This document shows positions 1 to 32,198 of a stretch of DNA of 64,000 nt, in pieces. Position numbers and translations under genes: made by a program. The DNA lies in the NCBI GenBank assembly GCA_002269645.1, contig NIVC01000302.1, positions 502,303 through 566,302 of the forward strand. The letters run 5' to 3'. The notes under the pieces are model-generated. The model made no database searches and was not told the DNA's origin. It saw nothing but the letters and a program-made list of their open reading frames with translations. This DNA comes from Macrostomum lignano (lineage: Eukaryota). Numbering within the stretch: the first letter of the stretch is position 1; every line of letters starts with the position of its first letter.

Positions 1-75
1 GAGGATTAGGCTATAAGAATAAAAAGTACTTTCGCTGTAAGCTGCTTCTCTAATCTGGGCCACGCTCCGCCCCAG

Positions 76-309
76 GCGTGGTCCAGCCGTCTGGCCAGCC
101 TGGCGCAGGCCGCGGCAGACAAGTGCATCTTCGAGCACAACTACGGAGGCGACTACGCGGGCCTGGGCGAGAATCTGTACATGGGCGGCGCGGACATCAA
201 ATCGGCGATCATGCTTTGGTACACCGAGGGCGAGAATTACAATTTCGCTACTGGCTCGTGCAGTCCCGGACGATATCCATCGTATACAACCTGTGGCCAT
301 TGGAGCCAG
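76..309 (+). CDS. CAP/SCP (CRISP/GLIPR/PI16-like) protein, internal exon A
   Basis: cccag acceptor at 75; open frame AWSSRLASLAQAAADKCIFEH...GENLY...WYTEGENYNF...CGHWSQ with the CAP motifs HN, GENL and GH(Y/W)xQ; donor CAG|gtaggc at 310, phase 0. Confidence 0.9.
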
Positions 310-450
310 GTAGGCAGCTTTGTACTCTTGTTGCTGCTAGAGACCATTTTATGCTCATTGTAAGACATCAAACTCAGATCGAAATCCAACACACTACCGG
401 TAAACGTGAGTATCTCTGTACAGCAGATTATTCTTGCCCGTCCTTCGCAG

Positions 451-536
451 GTTGTCAAAGCCAGCGTTTCGAGCGTTGGCTGCGGTCTGAAGAACTGCGG
501 TGGCTCCAGCTTGATCGTCTGCGAGTACAATTCTGG
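451..536 (+). CDS. CAP protein exon B
   Basis: ttcgcag acceptor; VVKASVSSVGCGLKNCGGSSLIVCEYNSG matches the CAP VGCG...VCxY motif; donor GG|gtgagg, phase 2. Confidence 0.9.
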
Positions 537-542
537 GTGAGG

Positions 543-645
<103 letters not shown>

Positions 646-753
646 GTGTCATGTCTGTCGAGCTTAGTCTATGGTTTTACCATCTTAATTGTAAACGCCA
701 GATCTAGCCCGTAAGTGTCCCCAACATCAGGTAAATCTGCTCCTTTGTTTCAG

Positions 754-881
754 CGAGGCTCAGCCGCCCTACACGACAGGCAAGCCGTGCTCGCAGTGCC
801 CCTACTACGCAATGTACTGCCACAGAGGTCTCTGCCTGACCAGCGCACAACGCAGCGCCCTGACAAATCCGTCAAATGCAG
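754..881 (+). CDS. CAP protein exon C (CRISP-type hinge)
   Basis: tttcag acceptor, phase 2; EAQPPYTTGKPCSQCPYYAMYCHRGLC is the canonical PY-G-PCxxC...C..GLC hinge; donor G|gtgaga, phase 1. Confidence 0.88.
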
Positions 882-3514
882 GTGAGACAAAAAACCAAAG
901 TGGCTGTTTGTTGATTTCATAGCCACAGTAATGAGAGAAAAACAATTTAACCGTCAAAGTCGTTGCTTTTATATAGAAAGCCAATATGTCGTTGTCGTTG
1001 ACTACAGATTGATTGTAGTCACCATTAGAGGGGCCAACTGGCAAATACGAACGTGTTTTAATATGGCGCGATTTCTTATAAGCACGCTGAACTGCCTACT
1101 TTTAATCAGTAGACGTTTCAGCTCATCAATGGTATTAGTTTTGCTAACTTGCTAAGACGCCAAGTAAACGCCGCGTTTCGCCCCCATACTTCCCATTTTG
1201 AGTCCCGGTGGCCGGATCGGGTGTGGGGTGGGGGTTCGGGACAAAGCCGCGGACTCGGAAGTAAAGCTCAGCGGAGCAGAAAGAAGTGTGGCGGATGAGT
1301 CAGAGCTTCTGCAGCTACTCACTCTCTTGAAGGGGGGCAGGGGCTGAAAGAGCTTTGAAAATGGAAAGCTTTGTCTTCCGGCGTTATTGAACGGAAGCGA
1401 GGAAATACATACAGAGAATGAAGAAAACTTCTTTTAAAGAAAAAATCAGATTATCTGCCCTACTAGAACCAACGGAAGGTGTTATGCCTACCGATAGCGG
1501 AAGCACTTTCATTTACCAAGGGGTGTAGCTGGGGGCATCCAAAATAAGGGTGGATTTGCAGCAGCTGTGGCGCCCCTTAATGCTGGGTGCTCCCACGATG
1601 GCGCCCCAAGATGGCGCCTCCCTCTGACTATTGCCCGCTGCATTTACCATCATAAAACGCGATATAGTAAACACAAATGATAAACGTATTTTGTTTATAA
1701 ATCACCAACAAAAATATCAACAAATATCTGAATACGCAAAACTGATCTGTCCAACCAGCATGCATTGGAGAGACCTTGAAATTCACGCTAGCAAAATTGA
1801 AAAAATAACCTAATGCCTGCATAATCGGCGATCCCAGGGGACCCTCTGATGGGGCGGAGGCTGGGACGGGAACTCAGACAGGCTTAACCGAGACGAATGC
1901 CTCCATGGAATTTCCTCGGCCAGCTTCCACCATCAACCTATACTGCTTCCTGCCTTCTCAGGTGAAAATTTCTAACACTCCTCAGGCGACCGGGTTCTGC
2001 TACCTCAGAAAGGGAAAAGCAAATGTAGAATAATGGGGAGGCGGGTGAGCGGGCAGGGTGGGGGCAATTTTTCGATCCGGAATCCCCGCCGCCAACCACC
2101 TCACCACCGTGCGGATGAATTTCCCACTTTGTCCCGCCAAGGCCCTTTTTTCTCCTTCGAGGGGGGGGGGGGGCGGGGGCTCCCAAGGTCCGAGCGGCTA
2201 TTTCCACTTCCCGCTTGTCAGTCAGCCCATCTCCTACCTCCAAGTCCCAGTAAATGAGGAAGGAGATGGATTAGGTAGAGAGAATCTGGGAGGGGACCAG
2301 AGAGCTAAAGCAGCATATAATCCATCCCACTCTCAGCAGCTTCCAAAGCTCCCCATCTCGGTATGGGGGAGGGATTGCCTAACTCAGCTGCTTCCTTCTG
2401 CACACGCTCAGGTATCCGGAATGGGGGATTCGGAGGATGGGGTGGGGCTAGCCAAAAGCCTGGCTGTGGCCGGGAGAGGAAGTGGATCGGCCCTCCCGCC
2501 ACTACGTTTCCCTCCAGCTTCCTCCCAGTCGCATTTCCTCTTCTCTTCCTCTTAGTCCAGCACCGGCAGTTTCCTCCTCCGACCTCCGGCCCCGGGCCCC
2601 AAGGATCCCAAGGCTTTTTTGTGATCTCCTAAACCCACCCCATCGCCCAGTTTCCTTCCTTCCTCTTTCCCTCATCTTCCGCCCGTATAAGTCGTATACT
2701 ATATACTTACATACATAAAGGTCCTACCCCCAACCTCTTAGGCCCCATCTCTTTCCGCTCCCTTTCGGAGGTTGGTTTGGGGGGGATGCGGAAAAAGAAT
2801 GGGGGGGGGGCTGTGAGACTCGCCATTAAGACCCAGACCCAGATTCCGTCTCCTCAGCCTCTCCAATGCCCAACTCTCCGCAGCCTCCTCCTCTCGGTGT
2901 AACCCTTCGGAGTTCTGAACTGAACCCTCCCGTCGTGCATCTATCAGCCTATCTAACCCTCCGGGCTTGTCCTATTGGATTGCGGGTAGGCTGCGTGGAT
3001 CAGGGTTTGGGGGAGGGGGTGAAAAACCTTCGCTCACTCACGCTCACACACGTCAGCCACGCCACGCGACGCGACAGGCCACCTCAGCTTTTCTCTCGTT
3101 CTCTCTCTCTCTCTTCTCTCTCGCGCGCCCCCATCCACCCACACACCCACTGGCTGGCGCTATACATTTCATTAGATAGCACGGAGAGAGAGGAGGGCGC
3201 AGGGGTGTCAGAGAGGACGGGGCAGGAATAAAAACGGTCTTTCCTTGGCTTGGGTTGTAAAGGCCAAGGTGGGGGAGGGGGCGAAGGAGAGAGGCGACGG
3301 GGGGAGAGGGGTGTGTGTGGAGGAGTGGGGTGGGTGACTTTTTAGAAGCCCCCCGCCCCGCACGCATTGAAGGCAAGCGTCGCGTGGGGAGGTTGGGGTT
3401 GTTTGCAGCGGAGGTAGGGTTGGCTGGGGGTCTAGCAGAGAGAAAGGACAAGAGCATAGCGGAGGCTAAAAAGGAAAGGAAAGGGAGAGAGGAGGGGTAA
3501 ACGCGGACGCGTAC

Positions 3515-3820
3515 AGCAGGAAGCGTATGGCTCATGTGCTCCGGCGCTTCCTGCCTCAACTGCCCTAGCCAAAGCTCTCTTTCTTGCCTCCCTCACCCAG
3601 ACCAACCCTCCCCTCAGTTCGGGCCTGACTTCCTGCTTGCCTTGATTATGGGTGGGGTGTCCTCGCTAGAGCGGAAATGAATCCTACCGACTTCCGCTGT
3701 TTAATAAGGCTCGGCGGATTCGCTTGCTTCCGCTCCGAGCCGAGCTGCAGGAAATCGAAGCCCGACTGGATTGGCCTGTCCGCTCCAACTTCCTGCTCCT
3801 TAAAACCCTGCCACTTCCTG
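3515..3820. promoter_or_regulatory. Cluster of ETS-type GGAA motifs upstream of the ETS gene
   Basis: ACTTCCTG at 3628, 3788 and 3813; ACTTCCGC at 3690; GCGGAAAT at 3671; GCTTCCGC at 3726; CAGGAAAT at 3748; CAGGAAGC at 3517. Confidence 0.5.
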
Positions 3821-4016
3821 TTCCATTTTCGGGTCTTCATTTAACCGTAGTCCGTAGCCCTGTTTACCAGAGCTGAGCTGACGCCAGGACCCGCAGAGCA
3901 GAGCAGAAGTGAGCCCGCTGGAGGAAGGGAGAGTCCCCTATAGTGAGCAGGCAGGACTTTGAACAGCGAAACTTTTTAAGTCCGTTCTATCGCAAGCCGA
4001 AGCTAAAAACCAACTC

Positions 4017-4238
4017 ATGGAGACTGAATCGGCTGCTGCGGCTAGCGAAGATCTTCGCCGTCACCGCCACAACAATCACAGTCGGCACAGCAGCGACGGC
4101 GAAGACAACAATAATTTTAACAATAATAACAATAACCATAATAATAACAGTCATCCGGCAGAGCAGGCTTTGTCCTCAGATGAGGACGGCGACTTCGGTT
4201 CCGCCGACGAGATTGGGAGCGAGGAGGCCAGCGCATGG
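4017..4238 (+). CDS. elk: ETS factor exon 1 (74 aa, Asn/His/acidic low-complexity N-terminus)
   Basis: ATG at 4017; open frame to TGG|gtgagt, a consensus phase-0 donor that joins in frame to the acceptor at 7467. Confidence 0.75.
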
Positions 4239-4439
4239 GTGAGTTACTGGCCAATTGCCTGTCCTGTATAGTTAATATTTTAACATGATATTGAATTTTT
4301 CCGTTTAATTTTCACTAATAAATCGACACGACACTAACAGGTCGAATCGCTTGGTCCCTTTGATTTTTTTGGGTCTCCGCCTAGGTTTTTAAAGCACCAG
4401 ATTGCCTTTTGAGGCCGCTAGGTTTCTTTTAAGAAGCGC

Positions 4440-5340
4440 CATGTTGAATTTTTGAGGCGTCAGGTTGCTTTTAGAGGTTTCAGGTTGCTTTTAGAGGCGC
4501 TTAGATTGCTTTTAGAGGTTTCAGAATGCTTTTAGAGGCGCTTAGATTGCTTTTAGAGGTTTCAGGTTGCTTTTAGAGGCGCTTAGATTGCTTTTAGAGG
4601 TTTCAGGTTGCTTTTAGAGGCGCTTAGATTGCTTTTAGAGGTTTCAGGTTGCTTTTAGAGGCGCTTAGATTGCTTTTAGAGGTTTCAGGTTGCTTTTAGA
4701 GGCGCTTAGATTGCTTTCAGAGGCGCTTAGATTGCTTTCAGAGGCGCTTAGATTGCTTTTAGAGGCGCTTAGATTGCTTTTAGAGGCGCTTAGATTGCTT
4801 TTAGAGGCGCTTAGATTGCTTTTAGAGGTTTCTGATTGCTTTTAGAGGCGCTTAGATTGCTTTTAGAGGTTTCAGGTTGCTTTTAGAGGCGCTTAGATTG
4901 CTTTCAGAGGCGCTTAGATTACTTTTAGAGGCGCTTAGATTGCTTTCAGAGGCGCTTAGATTACTTTTAGAGGCGCTTAGATTGCTTTCAGAGGCGCTTA
5001 GATTACTTTTAGAGGCGCTTAGATTGCTTTCAGAGGCGCTTAGATTACTTTTAGAGGCGCTTAGATTGCTTTCAGAGGCGCTTAGATTACTTTTAGAGGC
5101 GCTTAGATTGCTTTTAGAGGTTTCAGGTTGCTTTTAGAGGCGCTTAGATTGCTTTCAGAGGCGCTTAGATTACTTTTAGAGGCGCTTAGATTGCTTTTAG
5201 AGGCGCTTAGATTGCTTTTAGAGGCGCTTAGATTGCTTTTAGAGGCGCTTAGATTGCTTTTAGAGGCGCTTTGATTGCTTTTTTAGGCACCAGGTTGCTT
5301 TAAGAGGTGCTTAGATTGCTTTTAGAGGTGCTTTAATAGC
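4440..5340. repeat. 21-bp minisatellite (GAGGCGCTTAGATTGCTTTTA)n
   Basis: About 40 tandem units with variant types; lies in the ETS intron. Confidence 0.95.
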
Positions 5341-5949
5341 TTTTTAATTGCTTTTTGAGGCGTCAGATTGCCCTCTTAGGTGCCAGATTTCTGTCCTAGG
5401 CGCCAGGTTTCTATCCGAGGCGCCACATTGCTTTTTCAGACGCCACATCGCTTCTTTAGGTGTCAAACTGCTTTTTGAGGTTTCTTGCTGAGACACCAGA
5501 CCGGTTTCTAGGGGTGCTAATATATATGGAGCAATTAGTGTGCACAAGTGTTTACGAGTTCAAATATTCCATAGTCAATTTTCGAACGAAGCTGAGCTGG
5601 TTGGTGTCATAAATTATCATAAAAAGCTCCAACATAGCATAACCCAAAGCACTCAAAATCGTCTTTACCACGGGCATAACCTTAAAAAATTCCTAATAAG
5701 GACTTGAAATCAAGAAACCCCGGCTGCGCAGTTCTGCTTGCCAGTACCAAGGCATAAACTTAAGGTGATCCTTTTTACTAAACCTAAATTTAGTGTGTGT
5801 GGATAGCAGTTATAAAAATTAGCATCGAATATATTAAAATTGCCACCAATCGTGTGTCGCGCAGGGTTGAACAGCTGTTAGTGAGGAAGTTGGTTTGGTT
5901 AATGGTTGGCATGATTTTCATCGAAGCAACTCTTATTTTACATTGCATG

Positions 5950-6135
5950 TGAAAATGGCACCTCTTAGATTCAAAGTGCCACAAAACTCAATGAAAATGG
6001 CACCTCTCAGATTCAAAGTGGCACAAACTCAATGAAAATGGCACCTCTCAGATTCAAAGTGGCACAAACTCAATGAAAATGGCACCTCTCAGATTCAAAG
6101 TGGCACAAACTCATAATTAAAATGGCACCTCTCTC
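5950..6135. repeat. 41-bp tandem repeat, about 4.5 copies
   Basis: GAAAATGG recurs at 5951, 5993, 6034 and 6075. Confidence 0.9.
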
Positions 6136-6644
6136 TGGCGCCGCTGCCAATGCTGCATCTTAAAGAACTTATCTTTTTGAATTTTCTTTTTTGAGACAAT
6201 CATTTCTATTCTTATGCATTACTATTACTATCACTATCACTATAATTACTATTACTATTACTATTACGAAACTATACTATAGTAAGTAAACAATCTGCAG
6301 TTATTGCCAGCCATGGACGCCTAGAATATAATGATCTGGAACATTTTGAAGTTTTGAAGTTTACAGAGAAAGCTTCTAGTCCAGATCACTACCATCAGGC
6401 GTCCATGGTTAGTTCGTTCGCCATGGATAACATAGATTGTTATCGAACAGCATTCCTGTGGTTTTTGTGCCTTGGAATCTGTTGTGTCATGTCGTGAATT
6501 CTTGATGCTATTTATAGAAGCACATAGTTGTAGTATTTAAGTCTGTTTGATGACTATATAAGTATTAGGCTTGTCAGATCAGATCACGCACAAGAAAAAC
6601 AAAGATTGTTCATAGGCTGTCATTTAGGGCGCCAAAATAAACAT

Positions 6645-7330
6645 GAGGTCGCCAAAATGATCACGAGGTAACCAAAACGATCACGAGGTCACTAAAATGA
6701 TAATGAAGTCACCAAAATGATCACGAGGTAACCAAAAAATCACGAGGTCACTAAAATGATCACGAGTTTACCAAAATGATCATCAGGTCACCAAAATAAT
6801 CATGAGGTCGCTAGAATGATTTCGAGGTCACCAAACTGAGCATGAGGTCGCCAAAATGATCACGAGGTAACCAAAATGATCACAAGGTCACTAAAATGAT
6901 AATGAGGTCACCAAAATGACCATGAGGTCAGCAAACTGATCATGAGGTCACCAAAATGACCGTGAGGTCAGAAAACTGATCATGAGGTCACCAAAATGAC
7001 CATGAGGTAACCAAAATGATCATAGGTCACTAAAATGACCATGAGGTAACCAAAATGATCATAGGTCACCAAAATGATCATGACGTCACCAAAATGATCA
7101 TGACGTCACCAAAATGATCATGAGGTCGTTAAAGTGATAATGAGGTCACCAAAATGATCATGAGGTCACCAAAATGACCATGAGGTCACCAAAATGATCA
7201 TGAGGTTATTAAAATGATCATGAGGTCACCAAAATGATCATGCGGTCACCAAACGATCATGAGGTCATCAAAGTGATAATGAGGTCACCGAAATGATCAT
7301 GACGTCGCTAGAATTATCACGAGGTAACCA
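6645..7330. repeat. 20-bp minisatellite (TGAGGTCACCAAAATGATCA)n
   Basis: Period 20 is clear at 7141-7200; about 34 degenerate units. Confidence 0.92.
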
Positions 7331-7467
7331 AAATTAACGCGAGAGAGTCTAACCTTAATAATAATTTCCCAGAGCTAATTACAATGGCTATATAATATAC
7401 ATACAAAAGTATAAATTATACTCGAATTCCTAATGATTATGATAATTTAAATGAATTCTATTCGCAG

Positions 7468-9147
7468 CTCGCCCGCGCCAGCCGCAGCCTATGCGAAGAT
7501 TCCCAAGCCGCTGCTGCAGGCATGGACCTCAGTGGCGCGATCGGCGTCGGAGGCGCCGGCAGTGTCACCAGCACTGGCGGCGGCGTCGGTGGCGTCGGGA
7601 TCGGCGTCGGCGCCGACGGTTCTTCGCCGCCGTTGCAAGGCGAGGTGAACGTCACGCTGTGGCAGTTCCTGCTGGAGCTGCTGATGAGCCGGCAGTACTC
7701 GCACGTGATCCAGTGGACCAACCGGGAGGGCGAGTTCCAGCTGCTGAGAGCCGAGGAGGTGGCCCGGCTGTGGGGCATGCGGAAGAACAAGAACCACCGG
7801 ATGAACTACGACAAGCTGTCCCGGGCGCTGAGGTACTATTACCAGAAGAACATCATCAAGAAGGTCCAGGGGCAGAAGTTTGTGTACAGATTTGTCGGTT
7901 TAAGCGACAGCGTACTGAGGGCGCCGAGGTCACTTGGCACCGCGGCGGCCGCGGCGGCAGCGGCGTCGAGCATCGCGACACCGTCTGACGGAGTCAGCCC
8001 GAAGCTCGAAGCGGTGGACGACGATTTGCCGGCCTCTCCGCAGCTCGAAGAGCCGCAGGCGGCGATTCCCGTCCCGTTGTTGCAGAAGCAGCCGCAGCCG
8101 CCTCAACAGCTTCAGCATCAGCCGACCGAGTCGCTGACTCCGCCCCCACAGCCAGCGGTGCTGAACCACCAGCCCAGGAGGCTGTGGCAGCATCATCATA
8201 TCCAGCAGCATCAGCAGCAGCAGCACCAAGGCCTCGATCTCAGTCTGCCGCACGCGGCTGCAGCAGCCGCAGCCTTGCTAGCGTCGTCAGCAGCGTCAAC
8301 ACCGCCGCAGCCGCAGCCTTTGGCGCTGTCTAAGCGGCTCCGTTCGCCCGAATCCGCCGCCGCCGCCGCCGCTGCCTCCGCCAGATCGCCGGAGTCTCCG
8401 CCGGCCAAGCGGCCCTGCTGCGCTTGCCGCTGCCACGAGTCGCCGGTGGACTCGGCAGCGTCCGGAGCGAATTCTACTGCCGGCTCGACTCCTCGCATCA
8501 AAACCGAGCCGACAGTCGGAGCAGCGACAGCGGCGTCGGCTGCCGACTCGCCAGATAGCGGCAGCAGCGGCGGCGGCGGCTTGCCCAGCAGCTACATCCA
8601 ATGGCTGACTCTCGAGCTCGCTGGCGGAGCGGCTGCAGCCGCAGGAGGAAGCGGCAGCGGCGGAGGCAGCGGCGGCGGCCCCCCGGCTTTCCTGCACTCC
8701 AGCCGGCACGCGGCCAACATGAAGAAGCTGGCAGAGCACATCCGCCTGCAGAAGCTGTTCAAGAGGCCGTCGCTGACACCGACGCAGCCGCACCAGCCGC
8801 CGCCGACGCATCAGTCCGCGGATCCTGTCGCTGCCGCGGCTGCCTCGCCGTCAGCGTCAAGCCACGGCCTGAGCCATCAGCAGCCGGCTCCGCCGCACGC
8901 CGCAGCCGCTGGCCTCACCGCCGCCTCGTCGTCGTATGCAAGCAACGGGTCGCCGTTCTCCCCGCCCGGCTGCGTGTGGATGCCGGTGCCCGTGGCCATG
9001 CTGTCCCAGCTCTGGGCCGGCCAGGAAGCCGCCGCCGCCGTGGCCGCCGCCTCCGCAGCCGCCGCCGCTGCAGCCGCGGCCGCGGCCGCTCCCTCTTCAA
9101 CCTCCGGTGGCGTCCCCGGCGGCGAGTCCGAAGGTCAAGGCGAATAA
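7468..9147 (+). CDS. elk: ETS-domain transcription factor of the ELK/TCF (LIN-1-like) subfamily, exon 2
   Basis: ttcgcag acceptor with 18 open codons before Met 7522; ETS domain [11 protein letters not shown]...[45 protein letters not shown] closely follows ELK1/3/4; the joined protein is 633 aa. Confidence 0.92.
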
Positions 9148-10519
9148 ACGGCGGGACTCCGCCAGTGAAGCGCTATAGCTTATGGGTTGTCGACATCGTA
9201 GTGAGCAGCACTCTTTACATACCAATATTCCTACATACTCGCATATTAAACTATCAATATTATAGTAAATCTTTGTTTAAACTGTACAGCTAGTACTGAA
9301 TGCACGTCAAAACACTCCCAAGTGTACTTTTGTTTGTACTTTAATTTTTAGACAATATCTCGCCTCGGCCCGCTTTATAAATGCCATCCTTTGCTGCTAC
9401 CCGATTTTCTTTTTGTCTCTCTTTCCTGTTTTCCTTTTCTTGTTGCAAACCTCTCTTCTGCGCGTTTTTTCCTACTCCGCTCTGTCACCTGGGAGGGACA
9501 ATGCGAGCAATTATCAGTTCAAAGCGAAACTCGCAGCAGAAGAATGGACGTTGCGCCTACTGTTAGTAGCATTGGATTTTCGGTCAGTTTTTTTTTATGA
9601 TTCCTTTTCTTTTTAATATATTTTTGTCCTTAACTCCGCCCTCCACCCTCTTTCTTCGCTTGGGTCCCCACGTCCTGCCAACCGATGCATTCCCAGTAGT
9701 GCAGATCCCCCCTGTACATAGCAGCACGATCCCCTCCCTCGGAAGATCGCAGTTGTTGTACGCCATCAAAATCCGACTGGCTAAATAAATTATTAGTTGG
9801 GCACCAATGCTGCATGAGAAGGGGCAGACTAAGCTTCTCTTCTTGTTTTCAAATCGTCTGCAATGACCTTTCTTTGTGAAATTATTTCTATTTACAAAGA
9901 AATTGCTTGTTCAGGGAAGCGCGCGCTGTTTTTTGGGGGGCGCGGTTGATGGGGCCAGTACCAGTGGCGCCAGTATCAATGGGCACCAGTGCCAGTGGCG
10001 CCACAACTGCTGTGAACGGGGCGCCACAATTGCTGTGAATGGGGCGCCACAATTGCTGTGAATAGGACATTGTGTGATGCTAGGAAATGAACTGTCAGAG
10101 TGCAACAAATCTTGACCACCACTTCGTATAGCCCCTGTCTGGCTGGCAGAAAAAGATTGAAAGAATAAAAATATAAATATTTTTTCATTAAACTGAAATT
10201 TAAATTGTGTCCGTGGAATTGACAGTTCCAAGGGGACAGCTGTAGCTATATTAATATCCGGCCAGCAGGGAAGTGACTGCAGCTTACTTTACAGCTGCCT
10301 CGGACAGGAAGTTCAATTTCCGGTTTGGAAAGACTGGCGCCACCGTTTTGGCATCCTTGCTTCCGGCCTCGATTCAGTAGCAAAACTTTTGCCAATCTCT
10401 CTTTGCAGGAAATTTCTATGTATACCTTACTAGTTCCTCCGGATAAAGTTGTCATTTTTGTATCTTTTCAAGACTGTAATTTATGCATGACAAAGCGCAT
10501 CTGTTGACATGTTTGAGAA

Positions 10520-11190
10520 TGAATAACTGCCATTTTGGGTTTGAAGTGGACTGCCATTTTGTGTTTGAATTGGATTGCCATTTTGGGTTTGAATTGGATT
10601 GCCATTTTGGTTTTGAATTGGACTGTCATTTTGTGTTTGAATTGGACTGCCATTTTGTGTTTGAAGTGGACTGCCATTTTGTGTTTGAATTGGATTGCCA
10701 TTTTGGGTTTGAATTGGATTGCCATTTTGGTTTTGAATTGGACTGTCATTTTGTGTTTGAAGTGGACTGCCATTTTGTGTTTGAATTGGATTGCCATTTT
10801 GTGTTTGAATTGGATTGCCATTTTGTGTTTGAATTGGACTGTCATTTTGTGTTTGAATTGGATTGTCATTTTGTGTTTGAATTGGATTGCCATTTTGTGT
10901 TTGAATTAGATTGCCATTTTGGGTTTGAATTGGATTGCCATTTTGGGTTTGAATTGGACTGTCATTTTGTGTTTGAATTGGACTGCCATTTTGTGTTTGA
11001 ATTGGATTGTCATTTTGTGTTTGAATTGGATTGCCATTTTGTGTTTGAATTAGATTGCCATTTTGGGTTTGAATTGGATTGCCATTTTGGGTTTGAATTG
11101 GACTGTCATTTTGTGTTTGAATTGGACTGCCATTTTGTGTTTGAATGGGACTGTCATTTTTTTATGTGGACTGCCATTTTGTGTTTGAAT
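10520..11190. repeat. 24-bp minisatellite (GCCATTTTGTGTTTGAATTGGATT)n
   Basis: About 28 units; explains the DCHFVFEL repeat ORFs. Confidence 0.95.
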
Positions 11191-11666
11191 GCGGCTAACC
11201 TTTCTGCTTTGTTACATGTACCTCACACACGAGTCTGGAGAGCGGGGTGGATGCAGTTTGGATCAGTCTCAGGGGTCACGACAGACTTAGACAGAGCAAA
11301 ACAGCGGTTGAAAGTGAATATGCTTGACTAATGTGTTTCTTTAGCAAATGATTTGGAAAGCTTTGAGCTGGCGTGCAAGCGGGAATCGCACATACACTGT
11401 ATAGGGGCGGGGGGGGGCACCAGGGCATGTTTCAGCCGGCAGGTGCGGGCAAATGCATGGCGCCGTTCCCCATCATTATTCCCCAGCTCCTCATCAATTC
11501 CACACGTGACCCCAGCTGCAGTCACCTCAGAGCCCGCGCTGTTTCAAAGAAGCCTTTAATAAAATAGTGCAGCTCAGATAATAAGCCCGCGCATCCGATG
11601 CTTCACTAATTACACGGCATTAGCATGAGCTTTTAATCACACGGTTTTATCCCTGCTAATCGACAG

Positions 11667-11744
11667 CCTGCAGACCCGATTGCAACGACTGTCAGCACGT
11701 GACCTACTTGGAGAATGTCATGTGCCAGTGCACCAACAACGCCT
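11667..11744 (+). CDS. Cys-rich exon D, probable continuation of the CAP gene
   Basis: gacag acceptor; phase 1 entry gives (A)CRPDCNDCQHVTYLENVMCQCTNNA; donor T|gtaagt, phase 1. Confidence 0.7.
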
Positions 11745-12420
11745 GTAAGTGTGCTCCATATTGGTGACTTTTTAGTTAGTCCTACTTTTAAAGACACTAC
11801 CAATCAAATTCAACCAGTATTTCTAATTTTGTCTATGGTCAAAAGGAATGGTCAGATTCAGACAAGTCATGAGGCTCCTGTTGTATAAATGAAGTTGGGG
11901 AGTCAGCCGGACCCATTCAATCGATAGGATTGGTGTTCCATCCATGGATGTCCTCACGGTTGCCATGCGAGTGAAGTCCAGTTTGCTCCCGCACTGCGCT
12001 TCAGGCCCCGAGCGTGAAGATATCTGATTTTGTACACATGTTGTCTGACAGTTTAGTCACAGTTGCTATGGTTTCACTTGTTCGCTGTGAGCATGTCGCA
12101 AATCAAACAATTCTCGGTCTAATGCCAATGGTTCTGAGTTTGAAGTCTGAATTACAGTACACGGTTTTGGCCACAGACGATCGATGAAGCATTGGTTGAA
12201 TATGGTACATTGCTGTGTGTGGAACCCCTTGACACACAGAGAGTATCGAACTAAGGCCCACGGCATTCGACAGCCAGTCTTTGTACCAAGCCCCCATGAA
12301 ACTTTTACTACAAGCTATACTCGTACAAAGTACTTCCTCTTGCTCCGCCAATATTCAATCCCTATATAAGTTCAACTATAAACCGTCACTGTAATTGAAA
12401 CTTCCTACCACTTGGTACAG

Positions 12421-12543
12421 CCTGCACTGCTTCGGTGTGCAGCGCTGCGGGCACGCCGTGCGTTCATGGCAGCGACACGTCCAGCAGCGGTGGGGCCTGC
12501 GTTTGCACCTGCGCAAGCGGCTACTCAGGGCCGCAGTGCCAGT
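12421..12543 (+). CDS. EGF-like exon E
   Basis: tacag acceptor; CTASVCSAAGTPCVHGSDTSSSGGACVCTCASGYSGPQCQ has the EGF CxC..GYSG..C signature; donor T|gtgagt. Confidence 0.85.
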
Positions 12544-12659
12544 GTGAGTTTTGCGTCTTTGTTGCGTCTGCTAGCTTAGCAAAACTTTTAATGAGGCAGC
12601 TGCGCTACATTGGAAAGATGAAAGGCTTGTAAACTACTTTTTTTGGTTTCTATTGCATT

Positions 12660-12810
12660 TTCTAAGAAATTGACTCCAATTGGTACAGTCATTAGTGTCG
12701 ATTCTTAGAAAATGACTCCACTTTTTACAGCCATTAGAAAGGATTCTTAGAAACTGACTCTTTGTTACAGTCATTAGAGTGGATTCTTAGAAACTGACTC
12801 TTTGCTCACA
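12660..12810. repeat. ~39-bp tandem repeat, about 4 copies
   Basis: ATTCTTAGAAA(C)TGACTC recurs four times in the intron between exons E and F. Confidence 0.75.
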
Positions 12811-12903
12811 GCTTTTTAATTAAACTGAAAGGTAGTCTATTAAGAGCCAGAGCGAATGGTGAATTTCTTAGACAGCAAGCTCTTTCGCGTGGATCTATTC
12901 TAG

Positions 12904-12992
12904 TCGATACAAGTCAGCTGGACAATGGCATTCAGCTGCGCTTTGCTGGCGGAGTGCGGTCCTGCAGTTACTATCCGACACCCACGTATTTG
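12904..12992 (+). CDS. Exon F of the CAP/EGF gene
   Basis: ttctag acceptor, phase 1; (F)DTSQLDNGIQLRFAGGVRSCSYYPTPTYL; donor TTG|gtgaga, phase 0. Confidence 0.7.
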
Positions 12993-13129
12993 GTGAGAGA
13001 TAAAAATATAAATTTTAGCTGCCTTATGGGCCTACTTAAAGTAGCATTGATTGAACACGCTGATTAACTAGTTAACCAGTTACTAATAGAGAAGGGATCA
13101 GTGACAAGTCAATGAATGGCCCTAGGGGA

Positions 13130-13447
13130 AGAGAGGGAGTGACAAGTGATAAGCCAAGTCAAGTGACAAGTCAGTGCCTCAGAGGAATGGGAGGGAGTGA
13201 CAAGTCAATATCTCAAAGGAATGGGAGGGAGTGACAAGTCAGTGCCTGAGAGGAATGGGAGGGAGTGACAAGTCAAAGCCTCAAAGGAATGGGAGAGAGT
13301 GACAAGTCAATGCCTCAAAGGAACGGGAGGGAGTGACAAGTCAATGCCTCAAAGGAATGGGAGGGAGTGACAAGTCAATGCCTCAAAGGAATGGGAGGGA
13401 GTGACAAGTCAATGCCTCAAAGGAACGGGAGGGGGTGACAAGTCAAT
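13130..13447. repeat. 34-bp minisatellite (GAGTGACAAGTCAATGCCTCAAAGGAATGGGAGG)n
   Basis: About 9 units; period 34 (13331 to 13365). Confidence 0.92.
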
Positions 13448-13507
13448 GCGTAGGGTAGGGTAAAGGCATGTCAGATATCCAACCACCAGCCTCTCCTCCG
13501 TCCACAG

Positions 13508-13805
13508 TGGCAGAGCTCCCTCCAGTTACCCGTGCTCGCCTCAATCGCGGATATTCTCAACAAATTCTGCTCCGGTGACGACCTGGGATCGAATCTGACG
13601 GCCGCGGCAATCGCGGCGCTGTGCTGCCCGGACACCGGCGCCACGGCAGGCAACAGCCAGCTGTTCATCAATGCCAGCGACTTTGGCGTGGTGGCAGCCG
13701 ACAGCGGCTATTATCCGCTGCAGGAGGTGACAGGCGAGACCAAGGTGGTGCTGTACGCAAGGCGGAGATCCACTGACGCGTTCTGCAAGCGGGTGACTGC
13801 TTCCG
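13508..13805 (+). CDS. Exon G of the CAP/EGF gene
   Basis: ccacag acceptor, phase 0; in frame with ORF 13532 (WQSSLQLPVLASIADILNKFC...KRVTAS); donor G|gtgagg, phase 1. Confidence 0.8.
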
Positions 13806-13835
13806 GTGAGGAATACTCTCAGTTCTCCATTATCC

Positions 13836-14126
13836 ATGTACTTTGAGTTCTCCGTGTACTTTGAGTTCTCCTTGTACTTTGAGTTCTCCGTGTACTTTGA
13901 GTTCTCTATGTACTTTGAGTTCTCCGTGTACTTTGAGTTCTCCGTGTACTTTGAATTCTCCGTGTACTTTGAGGTCTCCGTGTACTTTGAGATCTCTATG
14001 TACTTTGAGTTCTCCGTGTACTTTGAGTTCACCGTGTACTTTGAATTCTCCGTGTACTTTGAGTTCTGTATGTACTTTGAGTTCTCCGTGTATTTTGAGT
14101 TCTTTATGTACTTTGAGTTCTCCATG
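13836..14126. repeat. 18-bp minisatellite (TGTACTTTGAGTTCTCCG)n
   Basis: About 16 units in the intron between exons G and H. Confidence 0.95.
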
Positions 14127-14327
14127 AACTTAGAGTTCGCGTGTCTCCAAACGGATTTTGTACAGATTTTTTCTTTTCTCCGTAGTTTAAATAGGGAACA
14201 ATTACGATATAGACAGACAAACTCAGTTGGGAAAAATCGTCTGAAAAGGTACACAAAAAGATGAAATGAAATGACATTTCCTGTAGTTGTTGTTCATGTT
14301 TAGTAAAACCAAAACCTTGCACTGCAG

Positions 14328-14680
14328 GCTCCGGCCAGTACCTGAACCTGTCCTCATTCGAGTCAATTCTACGGCTAGGCAACGCCAGTTTAGCTGGGAA
14401 CGGATCCGACCCAATTGGCTGCTGCGGCTATTATGCCACCGTGATTACATCGGCAAGAAATGCCACGGTGCAGTGGCCAACCTACTGCCTGGGCGGCGGC
14501 GGCGGCGGCGGTGGGGGTGGTGGATCAAGCAGCGGCAGCTCAGGCTCCGAAAGCAGCAGCGGCACCGGAAGTGGCCAGCTAACCAAAGTTGTCCTGGAGG
14601 CCGCCATCGGTGGCGGGATAGTCAGCTCGGCAGCGCTTCTGACCGTTTTGGGACTGGTCGTTGCGCTGGTTATTGTGTAA
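14328..14680 (+). CDS. Terminal exon H: Gly/Ser linker plus C-terminal hydrophobic segment (GPI signal or tail anchor)
   Basis: ctgcag acceptor, phase 1; open frame to TAA at 14680; ends ...AALLTVLGLVVALVIV* with no cytoplasmic tail. Confidence 0.8.
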
Positions 14681-14906
14681 GAGAAACTGGAGCCTTTGGT
14701 CTTGTGTATGATGTGTGCATGGTTCATGTACATGTAGTGCACATGCGAACCACAGAATTTCTTTCCACTAAAAGACGCAGAATCTGTCCTGATCATCTTG
14801 TACGAGGCGTGTCCAAAAGTGAGATTCGAACTCGTTACTTGATCAGCTTCAAAGTTGCCTGCGCTGCCTGCAAGCATGTAGAAGGGCCTTCGGCTGTGTC
14901 TTGCCT

Positions 14907-15137
14907 TAGTCTATGACTTATGGGCCATAGATTGCAAAAAGCCAAGCGAATTGATAAGAAGCCACCTACACTGAGAATCAATCGGTTTATACGTTGGCGT
15001 ACATTGGAACTAAAATGGCCGTCCCTCAATGCACAGACCAAACAGTCAGCTGGAGAGAGCTGGAAAAGTACCAGCTGGTCGATTCTCAGTTTTTTATCAC
15101 TTTGCTTGGCTTTTGTAGTCTATGGCCCATAGACTAT
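14907..15137. mobile_element. MITE with ~40-bp imperfect terminal inverted repeats
   Basis: TATGGGCCATAGATTGCAAAAAGCCAAGCG at 14919 mirrors CTTGGCTTTTGTAGTCTATGGCCCATA ending at 15131. Confidence 0.65.
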
Positions 15138-15167
15138 AAGGCAATCCACAGCCAAGGACTTAAATTA

Positions 15168-15530
15168 GGGGGGCCGTAGCCCAGCGGTAGCGCAGCTGCT
15201 CTGGTGTGCCAGCGACCCAGGCTCGATTCCAAGTGCAGTCACATTAATTTGGGGCTGAATTGGAATCTCGGCTTGGCTCTGCTCGTGCAATTAACGGCCT
15301 TGAGAGCCAACCCCCAAGGCGCAGTGAAGTGTACATGCCTAACGATAAATAAAGTTAGGGCCGCTGTACACTCCTGTGTGAGTGTGTGCCTGCGTACGTA
15401 TCCGCGCGCTTGTATGCCTGCTCAGGGGAGTCGGCGGAATGGGCAGTAATGCCTCTCGCCGGTTGTGTGCCTACGTCGCTTAAAGTGCGCCAGGGTGCAC
15501 ACAACCCCCCTGCCTCTAATAATAAAGAAA
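15168..15530 (+). mobile_element. tRNA-derived SINE, family B, with a structured 3' region
   Basis: GGGCCGTAGCCCAGCGGTAG (A box) and GGCTCGATTCC (B-box-like) in tRNA spacing; hairpins at 15433-15506; ends near TAATAATAA. Confidence 0.6.
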
Positions 15531-15715
15531 CAAGGTCTTTAATTGTTATGCAGGTTTGCGTAAACCTAGGTAAGTGCGAGATATCTACATATGTATGATG
15601 TATTTATTAAATATCTTATTTCTAAATCTGAGTGGATCGATCGATCAACCGGCCGGGTTTAACGCGTATCTTAATCTATATACCGGTAGAACATTGTTTA
15701 CTCGTCACGAGTAGA

Positions 15716-15995
15716 GGGTTTGTAGCCTAGTAGTTATAAAGCGTCGCGGACTCACAATGAAAAGGTCGGGGGTTCGATTCTCAGAATAATTGGTCTTTGA
15801 GCAAGACACTTAACTCTGCATTGCTTCAGTTCACCCAAGCTGTGAAATAGCAATAGGTACCAGCTTAGCTGAGGTAATCGAGGGCGATGTGGCGAACCCC
15901 CGTCCTTGGACTAAACAGCCGTACGCGGATGCGCGCCGCGCAATAGCTGCGACTGTATATACACATCTACTCATTGGGGCAGGTGTACAGTGTAA
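15716..15995 (+). mobile_element. tRNA-derived SINE, family A (CORE/MIR-like central domain)
   Basis: TAGCCTAGTAG A box, GGTTCGATTC B box, then TTGAGCAAGACACTTAACTCTGC...CACCCAAGCTGTGAAAT; second copy at 28418-28750. Confidence 0.8.
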
Positions 15996-16579
15996 TAACA
16001 AACTCGAAGACAATTGGTGCTGCAACCGCCGTCGAATGAGGCCAATTACCTGCCATCGGTCGCTTCACAGTCGCGATCATCACAGTTTTCTAATTTTTTG
16101 AGTACGAACATTAGATGATCGCCCAATCCTCATTCTGCAGCCCGAAAATCCGAGCAGCCACTTCAGCATCGGTCGTCAGCCCGTCGATCAACAAGAAGCC
16201 GGGGGAGGCGGCGGACCCGGATCCGCAGAGACCGACGACTCCGCCGCCAGAATTTGCCAACGCTGGCGATCAAGGAGGCGAAGCCCCTGGGCAGCAGCAA
16301 GACCAGCCCGCCGTGTTCAATGCGCCCGGACCGCTAATGGGGATGCCATTCATACCGGACTCTGGCAACGACCCGCTGCCTTCGTTTCTATGGAGACCGC
16401 CGGTGTAGCTTAAAGTAGTACCCAATTGACTGATTAAGCTAATTGGAGCTTCTAGGAGAACAGCTTAAAGACCATGCAGTCGGTAATCTGTCCTGGACGT
16501 CAAAAGTCGACTAACAATAGCCCTTCGTAGATGCAAGAAAAATTTCTCACCCCCTGTAAAAATCCTGGCTAAAAATATC

Positions 16580-16780
16580 ACCAACTGAAAGATCGAATCC
16601 AAAAATCTCACCCTTTAAGAGATCGAAGCCACAAATCTCACCCCTTACAGATCCAAGCCACAAATCTCACCCCTTACAGATCCGAGCCACAAATCCCACC
16701 ACCTACAGATCCAAGCCACAAATCTCACCCCTTACAGATCCGAGCCACAAATCTCACCCCTTACAGACCAAAGCCGCAAA
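16580..16780. repeat. 29-bp variant of the AAGCCACAAATCTCAC satellite
   Basis: About 6 units GATCCAAGCCACAAATCTCACCCCTTACA; shares its core with the 28-bp array. Confidence 0.85.
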
Positions 16781-17426
16781 TCGAACTCGTCTGGAGAAAA
16801 ATGAAGTTATTGACAATGAGTTCCAAATAATTTCAACTACCAATGACTTCCACCTCAAATATTAGCAAGCAGTGAGTAGATAGCCTGTTGGTTCAAACCC
16901 TCCGTGATGTTGCTTGAATTAAAATGTTACTCTATTGGAATAAAATATTGCCTATAAATATATTATTACTCTTTGTTTTACGATTTGTTGATGCTGATAC
17001 CCCCAAACTTTACACTTAAGCTGGCCGAATAAAAAATATATGTATTTCAATATTCTGTGTCAGCAACAATCAGTTTTGACAAACAAAAAAGTCACTGCAG
17101 TTGTTTTAACTAACAAAAACAAGTTATAATATAATATCTGATTTTCCCGTGCACAGTATATCAACATTCCGGACAATTTATATTTATTAACTATTCGAAA
17201 TTGAACTCAAAACGTTTTCACCAGCACTGAATAAAGAGCAAATAAGACAAGGCTTCGAAATCGATGAGATGGAGTATTGGAGTAATATTTAAGACCGAAA
17301 CTGGATACAGTAACACCGCAGCAAAGGCTCACTAGCCGATTTAAAGGTACAATAACTGCCAGAGTGCCCGAAAATATTGTAAACTGCTAACTGCTTCTAA
17401 CCGACTCGCATCAACATCCAAAAAAC

Positions 17427-20116
17427 CTCACAGTTGAACATAAAAGCCACAAATCTCACAGCTGAGGATCGAAGCCACAAATCTCACAGCTGGAGATGAA
17501 AGCCACAAATCTCACAGCTGAGGATCGAAGCCACAAATCTCACAGCTGAGGATCGAAGCCACAAATCTCACAGTTAAACATAAAAGCCACAAATCTCACA
17601 GCTGAGGATCGAAGCCACAAATCTCACAGTTAAACATAAAAGCCACAAATCTCACAGCTGAGGATCGAAGCCACAAATCTCACAGCTGAGGATCGAAGCC
17701 ACAAATCTCACAGCTGAGGATCGAAGCCACAAATCTCACAGCTGAGGATCGAAGCCACAAATCTCACAGCTGAGGATCGAAGTCACAAATCTCACAGCTG
17801 AGGATCGAAGCCACAAATCTCACAGTTAAACATAAAAGCCACAAATCTCACAGCTGAGGATCGAAGCCACAAATCTCACAGCTGAGGATCGAAGCCACAA
17901 ATCTCACAGCTGAGGATCGAAGCCACAATCTCACAGCTGAGGATCGAAGCCACAAATCTCACAGCTGAGGATCGAAGCCACAATCTCACAGCTGAGGATC
18001 GAAGCCACAAATCTCACAGTTAAACATAAAAGCCACAAATCTCACAGCTGAGGATCGAAGCCACAAATCTCACAGTTAAACATAAAAGCCACAAATCTCA
18101 CAGCTGAGGATCGAAGCCACAAATCTCACAGCTGAGGATCGAAGCCACAATCTCACAGCTGAGGATCGAAGCCACAAATCTCACAGCTGAGGATCGAAGC
18201 CACAATCTCACAGCTGAGGATCGAAGTCACAAATCTCACAGTTAAACATAAAAGCCACAAATCTCACAGCTGAGGATCGAAGCCACAATCTCACAGCTGA
18301 GGATCGAAGCCACAAATCTCACAGCTGAGGATCGAAGTCACAAATCTCACAGCTGAGGATCGAAGCCACAAATCTCACAGTTAAACATAAAAGCCACAAA
18401 TCTCACAGCTGAGGATCGAAGCCACAAATCTCACAGCTGAGGATCGAAGCCACAAATCTCACAGCTGAGGATCGAAGCCACAATCTCACAGCTGAGGATC
18501 GAAGCCACAAATCTCACAGCTGAGGATCGAAGCCACAAATCTCACAGCTGAGGATCGAAGCCACAATCTCACAGCTGAGGATCGAAGCCACAAATCTCAC
18601 AGTTAAACATAAAAGCCACAAATCTCACAGCTGAGGATCGAAGCCACAAATCTCACAGTTAAACATAAAAGCCACAAATCTCACAGCTGAGGATCGAAGC
18701 CACAAATCTCACAGCTGAGGATCGAAGCCACAATCTCACAGCTGAGGATCGAAGCCACAAATCTCACAGCTGAGGATCGAAGCCACAATCTCACAGCTGA
18801 GGATCGAAGTCACAAATCTCACAGTTAAACATAAAAGCCACAAATCTCACAGCTGAGGATCGAAGCCACAAATCTCACAGCTGAGGATCGAAGCCACAAA
18901 TCTCACAGCTGAGGATCGAAGCCACAAATCTCACAGCTGAGGATCGAAGTCACAAATCTCACAGTTAAACATAAAAGCCACAAATCTCACAGCTGAGGAT
19001 CGAAGCCACAATCTCACAGCTGAGGATCGAAGCCACAAATCTCACAGCTGAGGATCGAAGCCACAATCTCACAGCTGAGGATCGAAGCCACAAATCTCAC
19101 AGCTGAGGATCGAAGTCACAAATCTCACAGCTGAGGATCGAAGCCACAATCTCACAGCTGAGGATCGAAGCCACAAATCTCACAGTTAAACATAAAAGCC
19201 ACAAATCTCACAGCTGAGGATCGAAGCCACAAATCTCACAGTTAAACATAAAAGCCACAAATCTCACAGCTGAGGATCGAAGCCACAATCTCACAGCTGA
19301 GGATCGAAGCCACAAATCTCACAGCTGAGGATCGAAGCCACAATCTCACAGCTGAGGATCGAAGCCACAAATCTCACAGCTGGAGATGAAAGTCACAAAT
19401 CTCACAGCTGAGGATCGAAGCCACAAATCTCACAGCTGAGGATCGAAGCCACAAATCTCACAGTTAAACATAAAAGCCACAAATCTCACAGCTGAGGATC
19501 GAAGCCACAAATCTCACAGTTAAACATAAAAGCCACAAATCTCACAGCTGGAGATGAAAGTCACAAATCTCACAGCTGAGGATCGAAGCCACAAATCTCA
19601 CAGTTGAGGATCGAAGCCACAAATCTCACAGTTAAACATAAAAGCCACAAATCTCACAGCTGGAGATGAAAGTCACAAATCTCACAGCTGAGGATCGAAG
19701 CCACAAATCTCACAGCTGAGGATCGAAGCCACAAATCTCACAGTTAAACATAAAAGCCACAAATCTCACAGCTGAGGATCGAAGCCACAAATCTCACAGT
19801 TAAACATAAAAGCCACAAATCTCACAGCTGAGGATCGAAGCCACAAATCTCACAGTTAAACATAAAAGCCACAAATCTCACAGCTGAGGATCGAAGCCAC
19901 AAATCTCACAGTTAAACATAAAAGCCACAAATCTCACAGCTGAGGATCGAAGCCACAAATCTCACAGTTAAACATAAAAGCCACAAATCTCACAGCTGAG
20001 GATCGAAGCCACAAATCTCACAGTTAAACATAAAAGCCACAAATCTCACAGCTGAGGATCGAAGCCACAAATCTCACAGTTAAACATAAAAGCCACAAAT
20101 CTCACAGCTGGAGATC
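17427..20116. repeat. 28-bp satellite, about 96 units, two interleaved unit types
   Basis: Type A GAAGCCACAAATCTCACAGCTGAGGATC; type B AAAGCCACAAATCTCACAGTTAAACATA. Confidence 0.97.
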
Positions 20117-20460: not shown

Positions 20461-21162
20461 TCACGTGGCCTTGGCCCTCTGCGCAGCTCTCCTGCCCACC
20501 TGGGCCTGAAATCCAGACTTGATGCTGGCAACTGAGCACCGACTGCCGCAGGTGCTGCACTGCAGGAAGAACAGCCGAGTCTCCTTAACGAGCTCAGTGT
20601 CGTGAGACCGGCACGTGTGGCACATCACGTACTCCTTGATGTACGAGCGCAGCACCGATTCAATGTTCTTAGTCTGGAATCTGCCCTTAATAATGAGCTG
20701 GTTGTTCCCATCAACCGACCCGGTGGTGCCCAGCTCAGTTAGAAGGTAAGCCAACAGGTGGTCCGGCTTCCTTCGAATCTGCTTGCTGATCTCCGTGAAG
20801 TTGGCAAAGGCGGTCTTCTTGGTTCCAACTCGCATCAGAGACGGAGGCTTCATCACCACCTTCTTCTTCTCCGACAGCATATCCGGGTTCCGCTCCATCA
20901 TGGCGCGGAAGGCCCGGCTGAGCAGCTCGCTGTAGCTGTAATCCTTGTCCTCGCTTCCATCTCCCTCCACAGCTGACGCCGCGCCTTGGCCTCCGTCCTC
21001 CTCAGGCTGCTCAGCCGTCGCCGCGGGTCGCTCCTTCGGCGGCTTCTTCTTCTTCTTTGTTTCGAGGTTAAAGTCTGCTTCAAGCTCCTCATCCACTGCT
21101 GGGGTCTCCTCGGCCAGCTCCTTCTTCTTATTCTTCTTCTTTTTTATGCTCGGGTCGAACAT
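20461..21162 (-). CDS. EIF2S2: Translation initiation factor eIF2 beta subunit, main exon (copy 1)
   Basis: Poly-Lys boxes, core [11 protein letters not shown]...[18 protein letters not shown]...[14 protein letters not shown], and C4 zinc finger CHTC...CSTC; ATG directly follows a cgcag acceptor. Confidence 0.93.
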
Positions 21163-31010: not shown

Positions 31011-31024
31011 TGGCGACGAGGATG
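31011..31024 (+). other. Primer-binding site complementary to the tRNA-Ser(GCU) 3' end
   Basis: TGGCGACGAGGATG one base after the 5' LTR; the animal tRNA-Ser(GCU) ends ...CATCCTCGTCGCCA (recalled, not searched). Confidence 0.8.
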
Positions 31025-32185: not shown

Positions 32186-32198
32186 GGACGTCAGCGAG

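Follow-up and report, generated by a model that had tools for sequence, protein, structure and literature searches.

An ELK-type ETS gene probably nested on the same strand within an intron of a CAP-domain gene of Macrostomum lignano

Does a complete transcription factor gene lie inside an intron of another gene on the same strand, or do the exons on either side of it belong to separate genes? The question is raised by a 64,000-nucleotide (nt) stretch of the flatworm Macrostomum lignano (GenBank assembly GCA_002269645.1, contig NIVC01000302.1, positions 502,303–566,302, forward strand; hereafter, the window), in which an ELK-type ETS gene is flanked on one side by exons of a CAP-domain gene and on the other by exons encoding EGF-like modules.

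Layout of the locus

Letters 1–16500 of the window were read, and every boundary was re-derived. The order on the + strand is CAP exons A–C (42–881), the ETS gene (~3955–9147), and exons D–H (11667–16408). The original prediction had placed an ETS gene between CAP exon C and exon D, in the orientation of both exons, and this order and orientation were borne out; the coordinates given there for the exon C donor, the ETS open reading frame (ORF), and the start of exon D were all recovered unchanged. Judging from the sequence, we consider it moderately probable that this ELK-subfamily gene sits in the same orientation within a 10.8-kb intron of a lineage-specific CAP host gene. The host would most likely consist of exons A–C and D–H and encode one type I membrane protein. 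The proposed host intron (882–11666, + strand; 10,785 nt) has a phase 1 donor and a phase 1 acceptor, a junction predicted from the sequence, and holds the entire ETS gene.

The coding parts of both genes, the splice-site and phase relations of their exons, and the identity of the ETS gene are direct observations. A corrected ELK-like protein model and five further host exons (E, E', F, G, and H) are new, and the host itself would be new as a lineage-specific membrane-anchored CAP protein. The arrangement is a member of a well-known class, its ingredients (nested genes, ELK factors, and CAP proteins) are familiar, and current understanding is unchanged.

Coding signal was computed for each exon as GC content at third codon positions (GC3) and compared with the overall GC content of the flanking introns. 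GC3 was 0.71–0.84 in CAP exons A–C and in exons D–F, and 0.66–0.67 in G and H, against an overall GC of 0.38–0.47 in the flanking introns.

CAP exons upstream of the ETS gene

The first letters of the window already belong to a CAP-domain gene (+ strand), and the N-terminal part of the CAP domain is cut off by the window edge. Exon A (42–309, + strand; GC3 0.76) encodes the middle of the CAP/PR-1 domain in a frame-0 ORF that ends at the donor agccag/GTAGGC (slashes mark splice sites); its start at 42 is tentative. The end of the domain (VVKASVSSVGCGLKNCGG..CEYNSG) lies in exon B (451–536, + strand; phase 0 in, phase 2 out; acceptor ccttcgcag/, donor ttctgg/GTGAGG), which aligns with SmVAL4, Pry1, and Na-ASP-1 in a PDB sequence search. 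Exon C (754–881, + strand; acceptor tttgtttcag/) contributes a Cys-rich hinge (PYTTGKPCSQCPYYAMYCHRGLC) and a 15-amino acid (aa) linker. Its donor at 882, atgcag/GTGAGA, leaves one base over, and the phase 1 end claimed for this exon is therefore confirmed. If exon C were left unspliced, the ORF would reach a stop after 15 more codons.

The CAP domain was recognized by Pfam PF00188 with 54.5 bits (cut-off 21.1) over profile positions 14–117 of 117. In the PDB sequence search, exons A–C matched hookworm Na-ASP-1, Schistosoma VAL4, GLIPR1, and yeast Pry1, down to E = 6e-13. The Cys-rich hinge aligns to that of Na-ASP-1, which ends 3 residues past its aligned hinge, and the GLIPR1 match runs through the hinge. 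The host protein is like the CAP superfamily (CRISP/antigen 5/PR-1, with flatworm venom-allergen-like proteins [VALs], hookworm ASPs, GLIPR1, PI16, and CLEC18) in its CAP domain and in its Cys-rich hinge, which is of the group-1 VAL/CRISP/ASP type. It differs from CRISP proper, because no Pfam match to the C-terminal ion-channel-regulator (Crisp) domain was obtained with the A–D or D–E composites, and its stalk and tail (exons E'–H) differ from the superfamily in having no relatives.

The exon chain downstream of the ETS gene

Downstream of the ETS gene, D, E, E', F, G, and H make up a chain of six phase-compatible exons. The phase-1 Cys-rich exon predicted at 11667 was found as described: exon D (11667–11744, + strand; GC3 0.84) opens after AG (acceptor aatcgacag/), needs two bases to finish its codon, and leaves in phase 1 again at acgcct/GTAAGT (donor at 11745). 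It encodes an EGF-like Cys-rich module (ACRPDCNDCQHVTYLENVMCQCTNNA), of which only the cysteine spacing is EGF-like. The exon has no usable ATG, and an in-frame stop lies 8 nt upstream of its acceptor, so exon D must be internal. A start codon supplied by the spliced leader (SL) of M. lignano was also considered for exon D and rejected, because both possible acceptors run into early stops.

Exon E (12421–12543, + strand; phase 1 to 1; GC3 0.78) is bounded by splice sites and encodes a further EGF-like module, which in the PDB sequence search weakly matched EGF repeats of Notch and factor XII. A direct join of E to F was rejected because exon F has no phase-1 acceptor. This is solved by exon E' (12904–12992, + strand), an 89-nt linker of phase 1 to 0 between ctattctag/ and tatttg/GTGAGA, which was the sole good phase-1-to-0 candidate. 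Exon F (13508–13805, + strand; phase 0 to 1; GC3 0.79) encodes a 99-aa Cys-containing stalk of orphan sequence. The stalk in exon G (14328–14676, + strand; phase 1 to 2) is rich in N-glycosylation sites and is accompanied by a Gly/Ser run and a transmembrane (TM) helix (IVSSAALLTVLGLVVALVIV), with a hydropathy peak of 2.7 over 19 residues. Were the GTAAGA donor of exon G unused, the protein would end just past the hydrophobic segment at a TAA (14678–14680). The phase 2 acceptor of exon H (16141–16408, + strand; cctcattctgcag/; GC3 0.67) fits the exon G donor, and the exon supplies an 89-codon basic proline-rich tail, predicted to be cytoplasmic and closed by a TAG (16406–16408). All five donors in the D–H chain fit GT[AG]AG, which is also the motif described for M. 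lignano donors (PMC8629364).

No Pfam families were detected in D–E and F–G. The D–H block has neither a start codon nor a signal peptide, yet it plainly encodes an ectodomain. When exons A–H are joined, the ORF is open over 555 aa, and the product has the order CAP, hinge, two EGF-like modules, Cys/N-glycosylation stalk, Gly/Ser run, TM helix, and basic proline-rich tail. No paralog of the CAP exons or of D–H occurs elsewhere within the window.

Joining of exon C to exon D

The best-supported and most parsimonious arrangement would join exon C to exon D, because exon C needs a downstream acceptor, exons D–H must receive a signal peptide and a phase-1 donor from upstream, and no convincing other partner was found. 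The claim that exon C has no compatible partner before 11667 held up, since scans of 882–11666 gave no convincing phase-1 coding exon. The joined CAP-EGF-TM architecture would also be biologically plausible: in CLEC18, EGF modules follow the CAP domain, and GLIPR1 and PI16 are CAP proteins anchored in the membrane. If C joins D, the host would resemble the former in its EGF modules and the latter two in its membrane anchor.

An alternative that is unlikely, but that carries real weight, is three tandem + strand genes: a short secreted CAP-hinge gene, the ETS gene, and an independent EGF-stalk-TM gene. The CAP gene would then have its last exon or its poly(A) site within 882–~3900. This is architecturally possible, because CAP plus hinge is the whole protein in many families (ASPs and VALs), and variant poly(A)-like hexamers are present near 1163 and 1650–1700. 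On the other side, the canonical hexamers AATAAA and ATTAAA were absent from 882–3226 in a hexamer scan, that is, for 2.3 kb past exon C, which makes it unlikely that exon C is terminal. The strong AGGT[AG]AG donor motif has just nine copies on the + strand of the 64 kb, and one of these is the exon C donor, which falls exactly at the end of the coding-like sequence. Scans of 882–4016 and of 9148–11666 detected no coding-like phase-1 exon. Neither a different partner for exon C nor an end before 4000 was thus seen as far as these scans reach (coding-like exons to 4016, canonical hexamers to 3226).

The tandem arrangement would also need an unrecognized signal-peptide exon for the EGF-stalk-TM gene within 9148–11666. 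Upstream exons belonging to D itself were sought there, and only weak candidates came to light, none of them credible. The best is MAPFPIIIPQLLINST at 11457–11505, which ends in phase 1 and would leave a 161-nt intron to exon D, but the candidates have poor donors (cac/GTGACC for this one, and act/GTTAGT) and poor signal-peptide character.

Several points weigh against joining C to D across the ETS gene. The splice junctions throughout the locus are themselves predictions from the DNA letters, and the 881/11667 junction found no support from a transcript, an exact-match contig, or a homolog of the same architecture. The CAP-EGF-TM architecture is backed by no ortholog, because the composites CAP+D+E and D–G had no homolog in a 5.8-billion-cluster database (at E <= 1e-3 and 1e-2, respectively) and exon F had none among 1.84 billion representative proteins (HMMER); the host gene also seems to be unannotated. 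Exact-protein look-ups with a 541-aa ETS ORF and an eIF2-beta ORF (both described below) returned no record, and nothing was found either by a metagenome scan with the DNA of exon D or by a scan for related loci with exon 2 of the ETS gene. An intron of 10.8 kb is ~10 times the M. lignano mean of 1,114 nt (PMC10468722), a length that also speaks for tandem genes. The matching phases of exons C and D have a chance expectation of 1 in 3, and a better-looking acceptor, cctgcag/, lies 7 nt within exon D, where its use would cause a frameshift.

It is improbable, although the homology searches are in keeping with it, that the host is no longer one functional unit, a CAP-EGF-TM gene having been split by insertion or rearrangement of the ETS segment, or by mis-assembly, so that one or both halves would be relics. 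Neither half has a homolog or annotation, the interval is packed with satellites, and the M. lignano genome is repeat-rich and recently duplicated, the species being a hidden polyploid with an unstable karyotype (PMC10468722). Decay or misjoining is at odds with the host exons, all nine of which are open in frame, high in GC3, and bounded by canonical splice sites, and with the ETS gene, which is intact and has conserved motifs. A single host gene that spans the ETS gene is the reading we prefer.

Structure of the ETS gene

The original prediction described a complete inner gene with its own ATG at 4017, an intron at 4239–7467, and a stop ending at 9147. The joined ORF agrees, with 633 codons and no internal stop from ATG 4017–4019 to TAA 9145–9147. 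The coding part of exon 1 (4017–4238, + strand) has 74 codons and ends in phase 0 at gcatgg/GTGAGT (donor at 4239). Exon 2 (7468–9147, + strand; acceptor ttcgcag/) has 559 codons plus the TAA; it encodes the ETS domain as well as the ELK-like motifs of flatworms. The intervening intron (4239–7467, + strand) is 3,229 nt long, of the GT..AG type with a GTGAGT donor, has a GC content of 0.39, and consists mainly of satellite arrays. Candidate poly(A) hexamers in the 3' region (9143–10192, + strand) were found by the hexamer scan at 9143, 9245, 9784, 10164, and 10187.

By far the best database match to the product was UniRef A0A1I8JN23, an "ETS domain-containing protein" of Macrostomum lignano (E = 7e-222). 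When mapped onto the window with tblastn, this entry aligned at 3955–4215, 6366–6407, 7462–9200, and 9913–10022, in long identical stretches with frame changes at several homopolymers. It is, on this alignment, the same locus modeled on an older indel-prone assembly, and the match identifies the window as DNA of this free-living flatworm. The 633-aa ELK-like model is better than this frameshifted public entry. The start of A0A1I8JN23, straight after an AG (gcaggcag/GAC), delimits a putative 5' untranslated leader at 3955–4016 (+ strand).

The two-exon count is the uncertain part of the predicted structure: the ORF of 4017–4238/7468–9147 is intact, but the only public model adds a 41-nt exon. 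This candidate cassette exon (6367–6407, + strand) lies within the ETS intron, is flanked by tttacag/ and /GTTAGT, and corresponds to residues 95–108 of A0A1I8JN23. Its inclusion in the present sequence shifts the ORF from ATG 4017 into a premature stop. Either it arose when the gene predictor mended frameshifts of the assembly, or it is a genuine exon of the poison or alternative kind; in the latter case, the start codon would be ATG 7522, which opens the 541-aa ORF.

Exon 1 is supported by an ORF that is open from ATG 4017 to a strong donor, in frame with exon 2, and the region is part of the public model. ATG 4017 is also the first ATG past 3677, with none in 3678–4016. Signs to the contrary are a GC3 of just 0.59, against 0.79 in exon 2, and the low complexity of the encoded N-terminus, which is Asn-rich and acidic. 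The exon 1 peptide has no significant similarity to relatives, and a homology to the acidic region that precedes the ETS domain in schistosomes was rejected for that reason. A second reading frame is likewise open over all of exon 1 (3955–4238).

A GC-rich tract (0.58) with alternating G-rich and C-rich low-complexity runs occupies 2000–4000, upstream of the ETS gene; nearby introns have a GC content of 0.39–0.44. This tract may be the ETS promoter region.

Relationship of the ETS product to ELK proteins

The inner gene had been called ELK-type, and this assignment was upheld by its ETS DNA-binding domain, a winged helix-turn-helix (7654–7896, + strand; residues 137–217 of the 633-aa product). 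Pfam PF00178 (Ets) matched over the full profile (1–81) with 113.7 bits (cut-off 26.9). Among PDB sequences, the domain was closest to ELK-4 (129.3 bits) and ELK-1 (127.4 bits), followed by ETV4 (99.6 bits) and ETS1 (~95 bits); the ELK proteins therefore lead the other ETS subfamilies, all at 99.6 bits or less, by ~30 bits. The named top matches in the 5.8-billion-cluster database were Elk-1/3/4 and LIN-1, and identity of the ETS domain to proteins annotated as Elk-1/3/4 was 73%–80%.

The product was aligned with seven neodermatan ELK-like proteins (Schistosoma, Trichobilharzia, Taenia, Echinococcus, Schistocephalus, and Spirometra) using MAFFT. Three C-terminal motifs outside the ETS domain are common to exon 2 and the neodermatan proteins: RSPCCxCSCH, LHxxRHxINMK, and one 11-residue motif. 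As patterns across the flatworm ELK-like set, the first two read CCxCxCH and LHxxRHxxNMK. Low-complexity Ala/Gln/Pro/Gly sequence makes up most of the product.

The ETS domain is not at the extreme N terminus, unlike the typical ELK/TCF placement. LWQFL starts at residue 138 when translation begins at ATG 4017, or at residue 46 from ATG 7522. Across 119 matches, the median start of the ETS domain is 33, whereas in flatworm relatives it is mostly 124–208. The neodermatan ELK-like proteins mostly carry 120–200 residues ahead of the domain, so that an extension like the one encoded by exon 1 is usual in flatworms and atypical among ELK proteins generally, as far as the aligned sequences indicate.

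A simple search of the product, with plain patterns in place of profiles, found 16 S/T-P sites and one D-like motif of the basic-hydrophobic type; it gave no match to the FxFP docking motif or to a B-box-like motif (SRF interaction). Compared with the ELK/TCF proteins (human ELK1, ELK3, and ELK4; C. elegans LIN-1), the product is alike in the ETS domain and differs in the start of that domain at residue 137 and in the lack of FxFP or B-box pattern matches. Parasitic-flatworm ELK-like proteins share its three extra motifs and its long N-terminal extension. By sequence comparison, the inner gene is a genuine conserved member of the ELK subfamily, with the label "ELK-type" resting on the DNA-binding domain.

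Transcription and splicing of nested genes

The ETS gene would be driven by its own promoter in the GC-rich 2–4 kb region. In host transcription, exon C would be spliced to exon D and the entire ETS gene removed as intron. Pairing 881 with 11667 would mean that the host pre-mRNA extends across the promoter of the ETS gene, two or three of its acceptors and donors, and no fewer than five poly(A) hexamers (9143–10187); all of these splice sites and poly(A) signals would have to go unused by the host transcript. Should exons C and D really be joined, the locus would offer a clean case of two genes nested on one strand, in a flatworm model that regenerates and also uses SL trans-splicing. It could then serve to test how host transcripts disregard internal splice and poly(A) signals, and it would define a CAP-EGF membrane protein that is lineage-specific and so far unannotated.

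A comparable arrangement is the cholinergic locus (unc-17/cha-1 in C. elegans), where the gene of the vesicular acetylcholine transporter lies in the first intron of the choline acetyltransferase gene on the same strand. The M. lignano locus would likewise have a full protein-coding gene in the same orientation within a proposed intron, and its host transcript would have to skip the inner processing signals. The two cases differ in that the cholinergic genes have a 5' exon in common and are linked in function, whereas here there is no sign of a shared exon or of a functional link between ELK and CAP, and the host junction is a predicted one.

Nested genes were described in the original prediction as usually antisense to their hosts. 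In human, ~63% of nested genes are on the opposite strand and ~37% on the same strand (PMC3192792); the majority is as described, but the bias is modest, and same-strand nesting is not unusual. Nested genes are known to be subject to transcriptional interference (PMC3192792), so that the two genes, if nested, can reasonably be expected to differ in where they are expressed, and strong co-expression in one cell would be unlikely. The earlier suggestion that their expression may be mutually exclusive or coupled is a hypothesis.

In M. lignano, a 35-nt leader that ends in ATG is trans-spliced onto the transcripts of 30% of genes, and 15% of genes lie in operons (PMC8629364), which offers a further route for expression of an internal gene on the same strand. 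We think it very improbable that this route is used here. The 35-nt SL would be added at 3955 or 7468, thereby releasing the ETS mRNA (or a single isoform) from the host pre-mRNA, and the two genes would share the host promoter as in an operon. The start of the public ETS model at 3955, right after AG, is what would be expected if the SL were spliced there and the leader trimmed, but an SL ATG at that position would open an out-of-frame ORF of 154 codons. Joined at 7468, the SL ATG is in frame with the ETS ORF (M-LARASRSL...); against this, the YTNCAG motif that is enriched at trans-splice sites is absent from both acceptors. With a raw distance of at least 3 kb, the genes here are farther apart than is typical of M. 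lignano operons, whose repeat-adjusted spacing peaks near 100 bp and for which a cut-off of 1 kb was applied (PMC8629364). We give very little credence to an extension of this idea, in which the intron would serve as an "internal operon slot," with cis-splicing of host exons C and D and SL trans-splicing plus polyadenylation of ELK as mutually exclusive fates of one transcript. An ETS gene with its own promoter, removed from the host transcript as intron, is the mechanism we favor.

Other features of the window

No Rfam family, tRNA gene, or SL RNA gene was found within the 64-kb window. Two identical, intronless eIF2-beta-like ORFs of 233 aa (PF01873, 136 bits) lie at 20461–21162 (− strand) and 41471–42172 (+ strand), within a 1.37-kb inverted duplication that is 96% identical (19836–21203/41430–42803). 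Their appearance is that of duplicated retrocopies, with ~20 kb of AT-rich DNA and a retrotransposon between them.

A long terminal repeat (LTR) retrotransposon occupies 30725–35618 (+ strand), with ~280-bp LTRs (30725–31000 and 35327–35618) that are 91% identical. Its ORFs are long but split: gag-like (31010–32185), reverse transcriptase (32199–33170), and RNase H-integrase (33497–35299). A piggyBac-type transposase fragment (50164–50619, + strand; PF13843 DDE_Tnp_1_7, 68.8 bits) is surrounded by overlapping ORFs on both strands. Near the end of the window, the last exon of a rhodopsin-family G-protein-coupled receptor gene (63309–63791, − strand) encodes TM6–TM7 and the C-terminal tail, with a PF00001 score of 29.7 bits, just below the 30.5 cut-off; the remainder of the gene would extend past the window end.

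Many tandem satellite arrays with 20–60-bp units are present, at 4440–5280, 6620–7330, 10500–11170, 13080–13450, 13830–14130, 16560–20100, 52853–57714, and 61095–63232. Several of them lie within introns of the ETS and host genes, and several produce long spurious ORFs. The array at 52.85–57.7 kb has a unit of ~31 bp and a strong strand bias of T over A.

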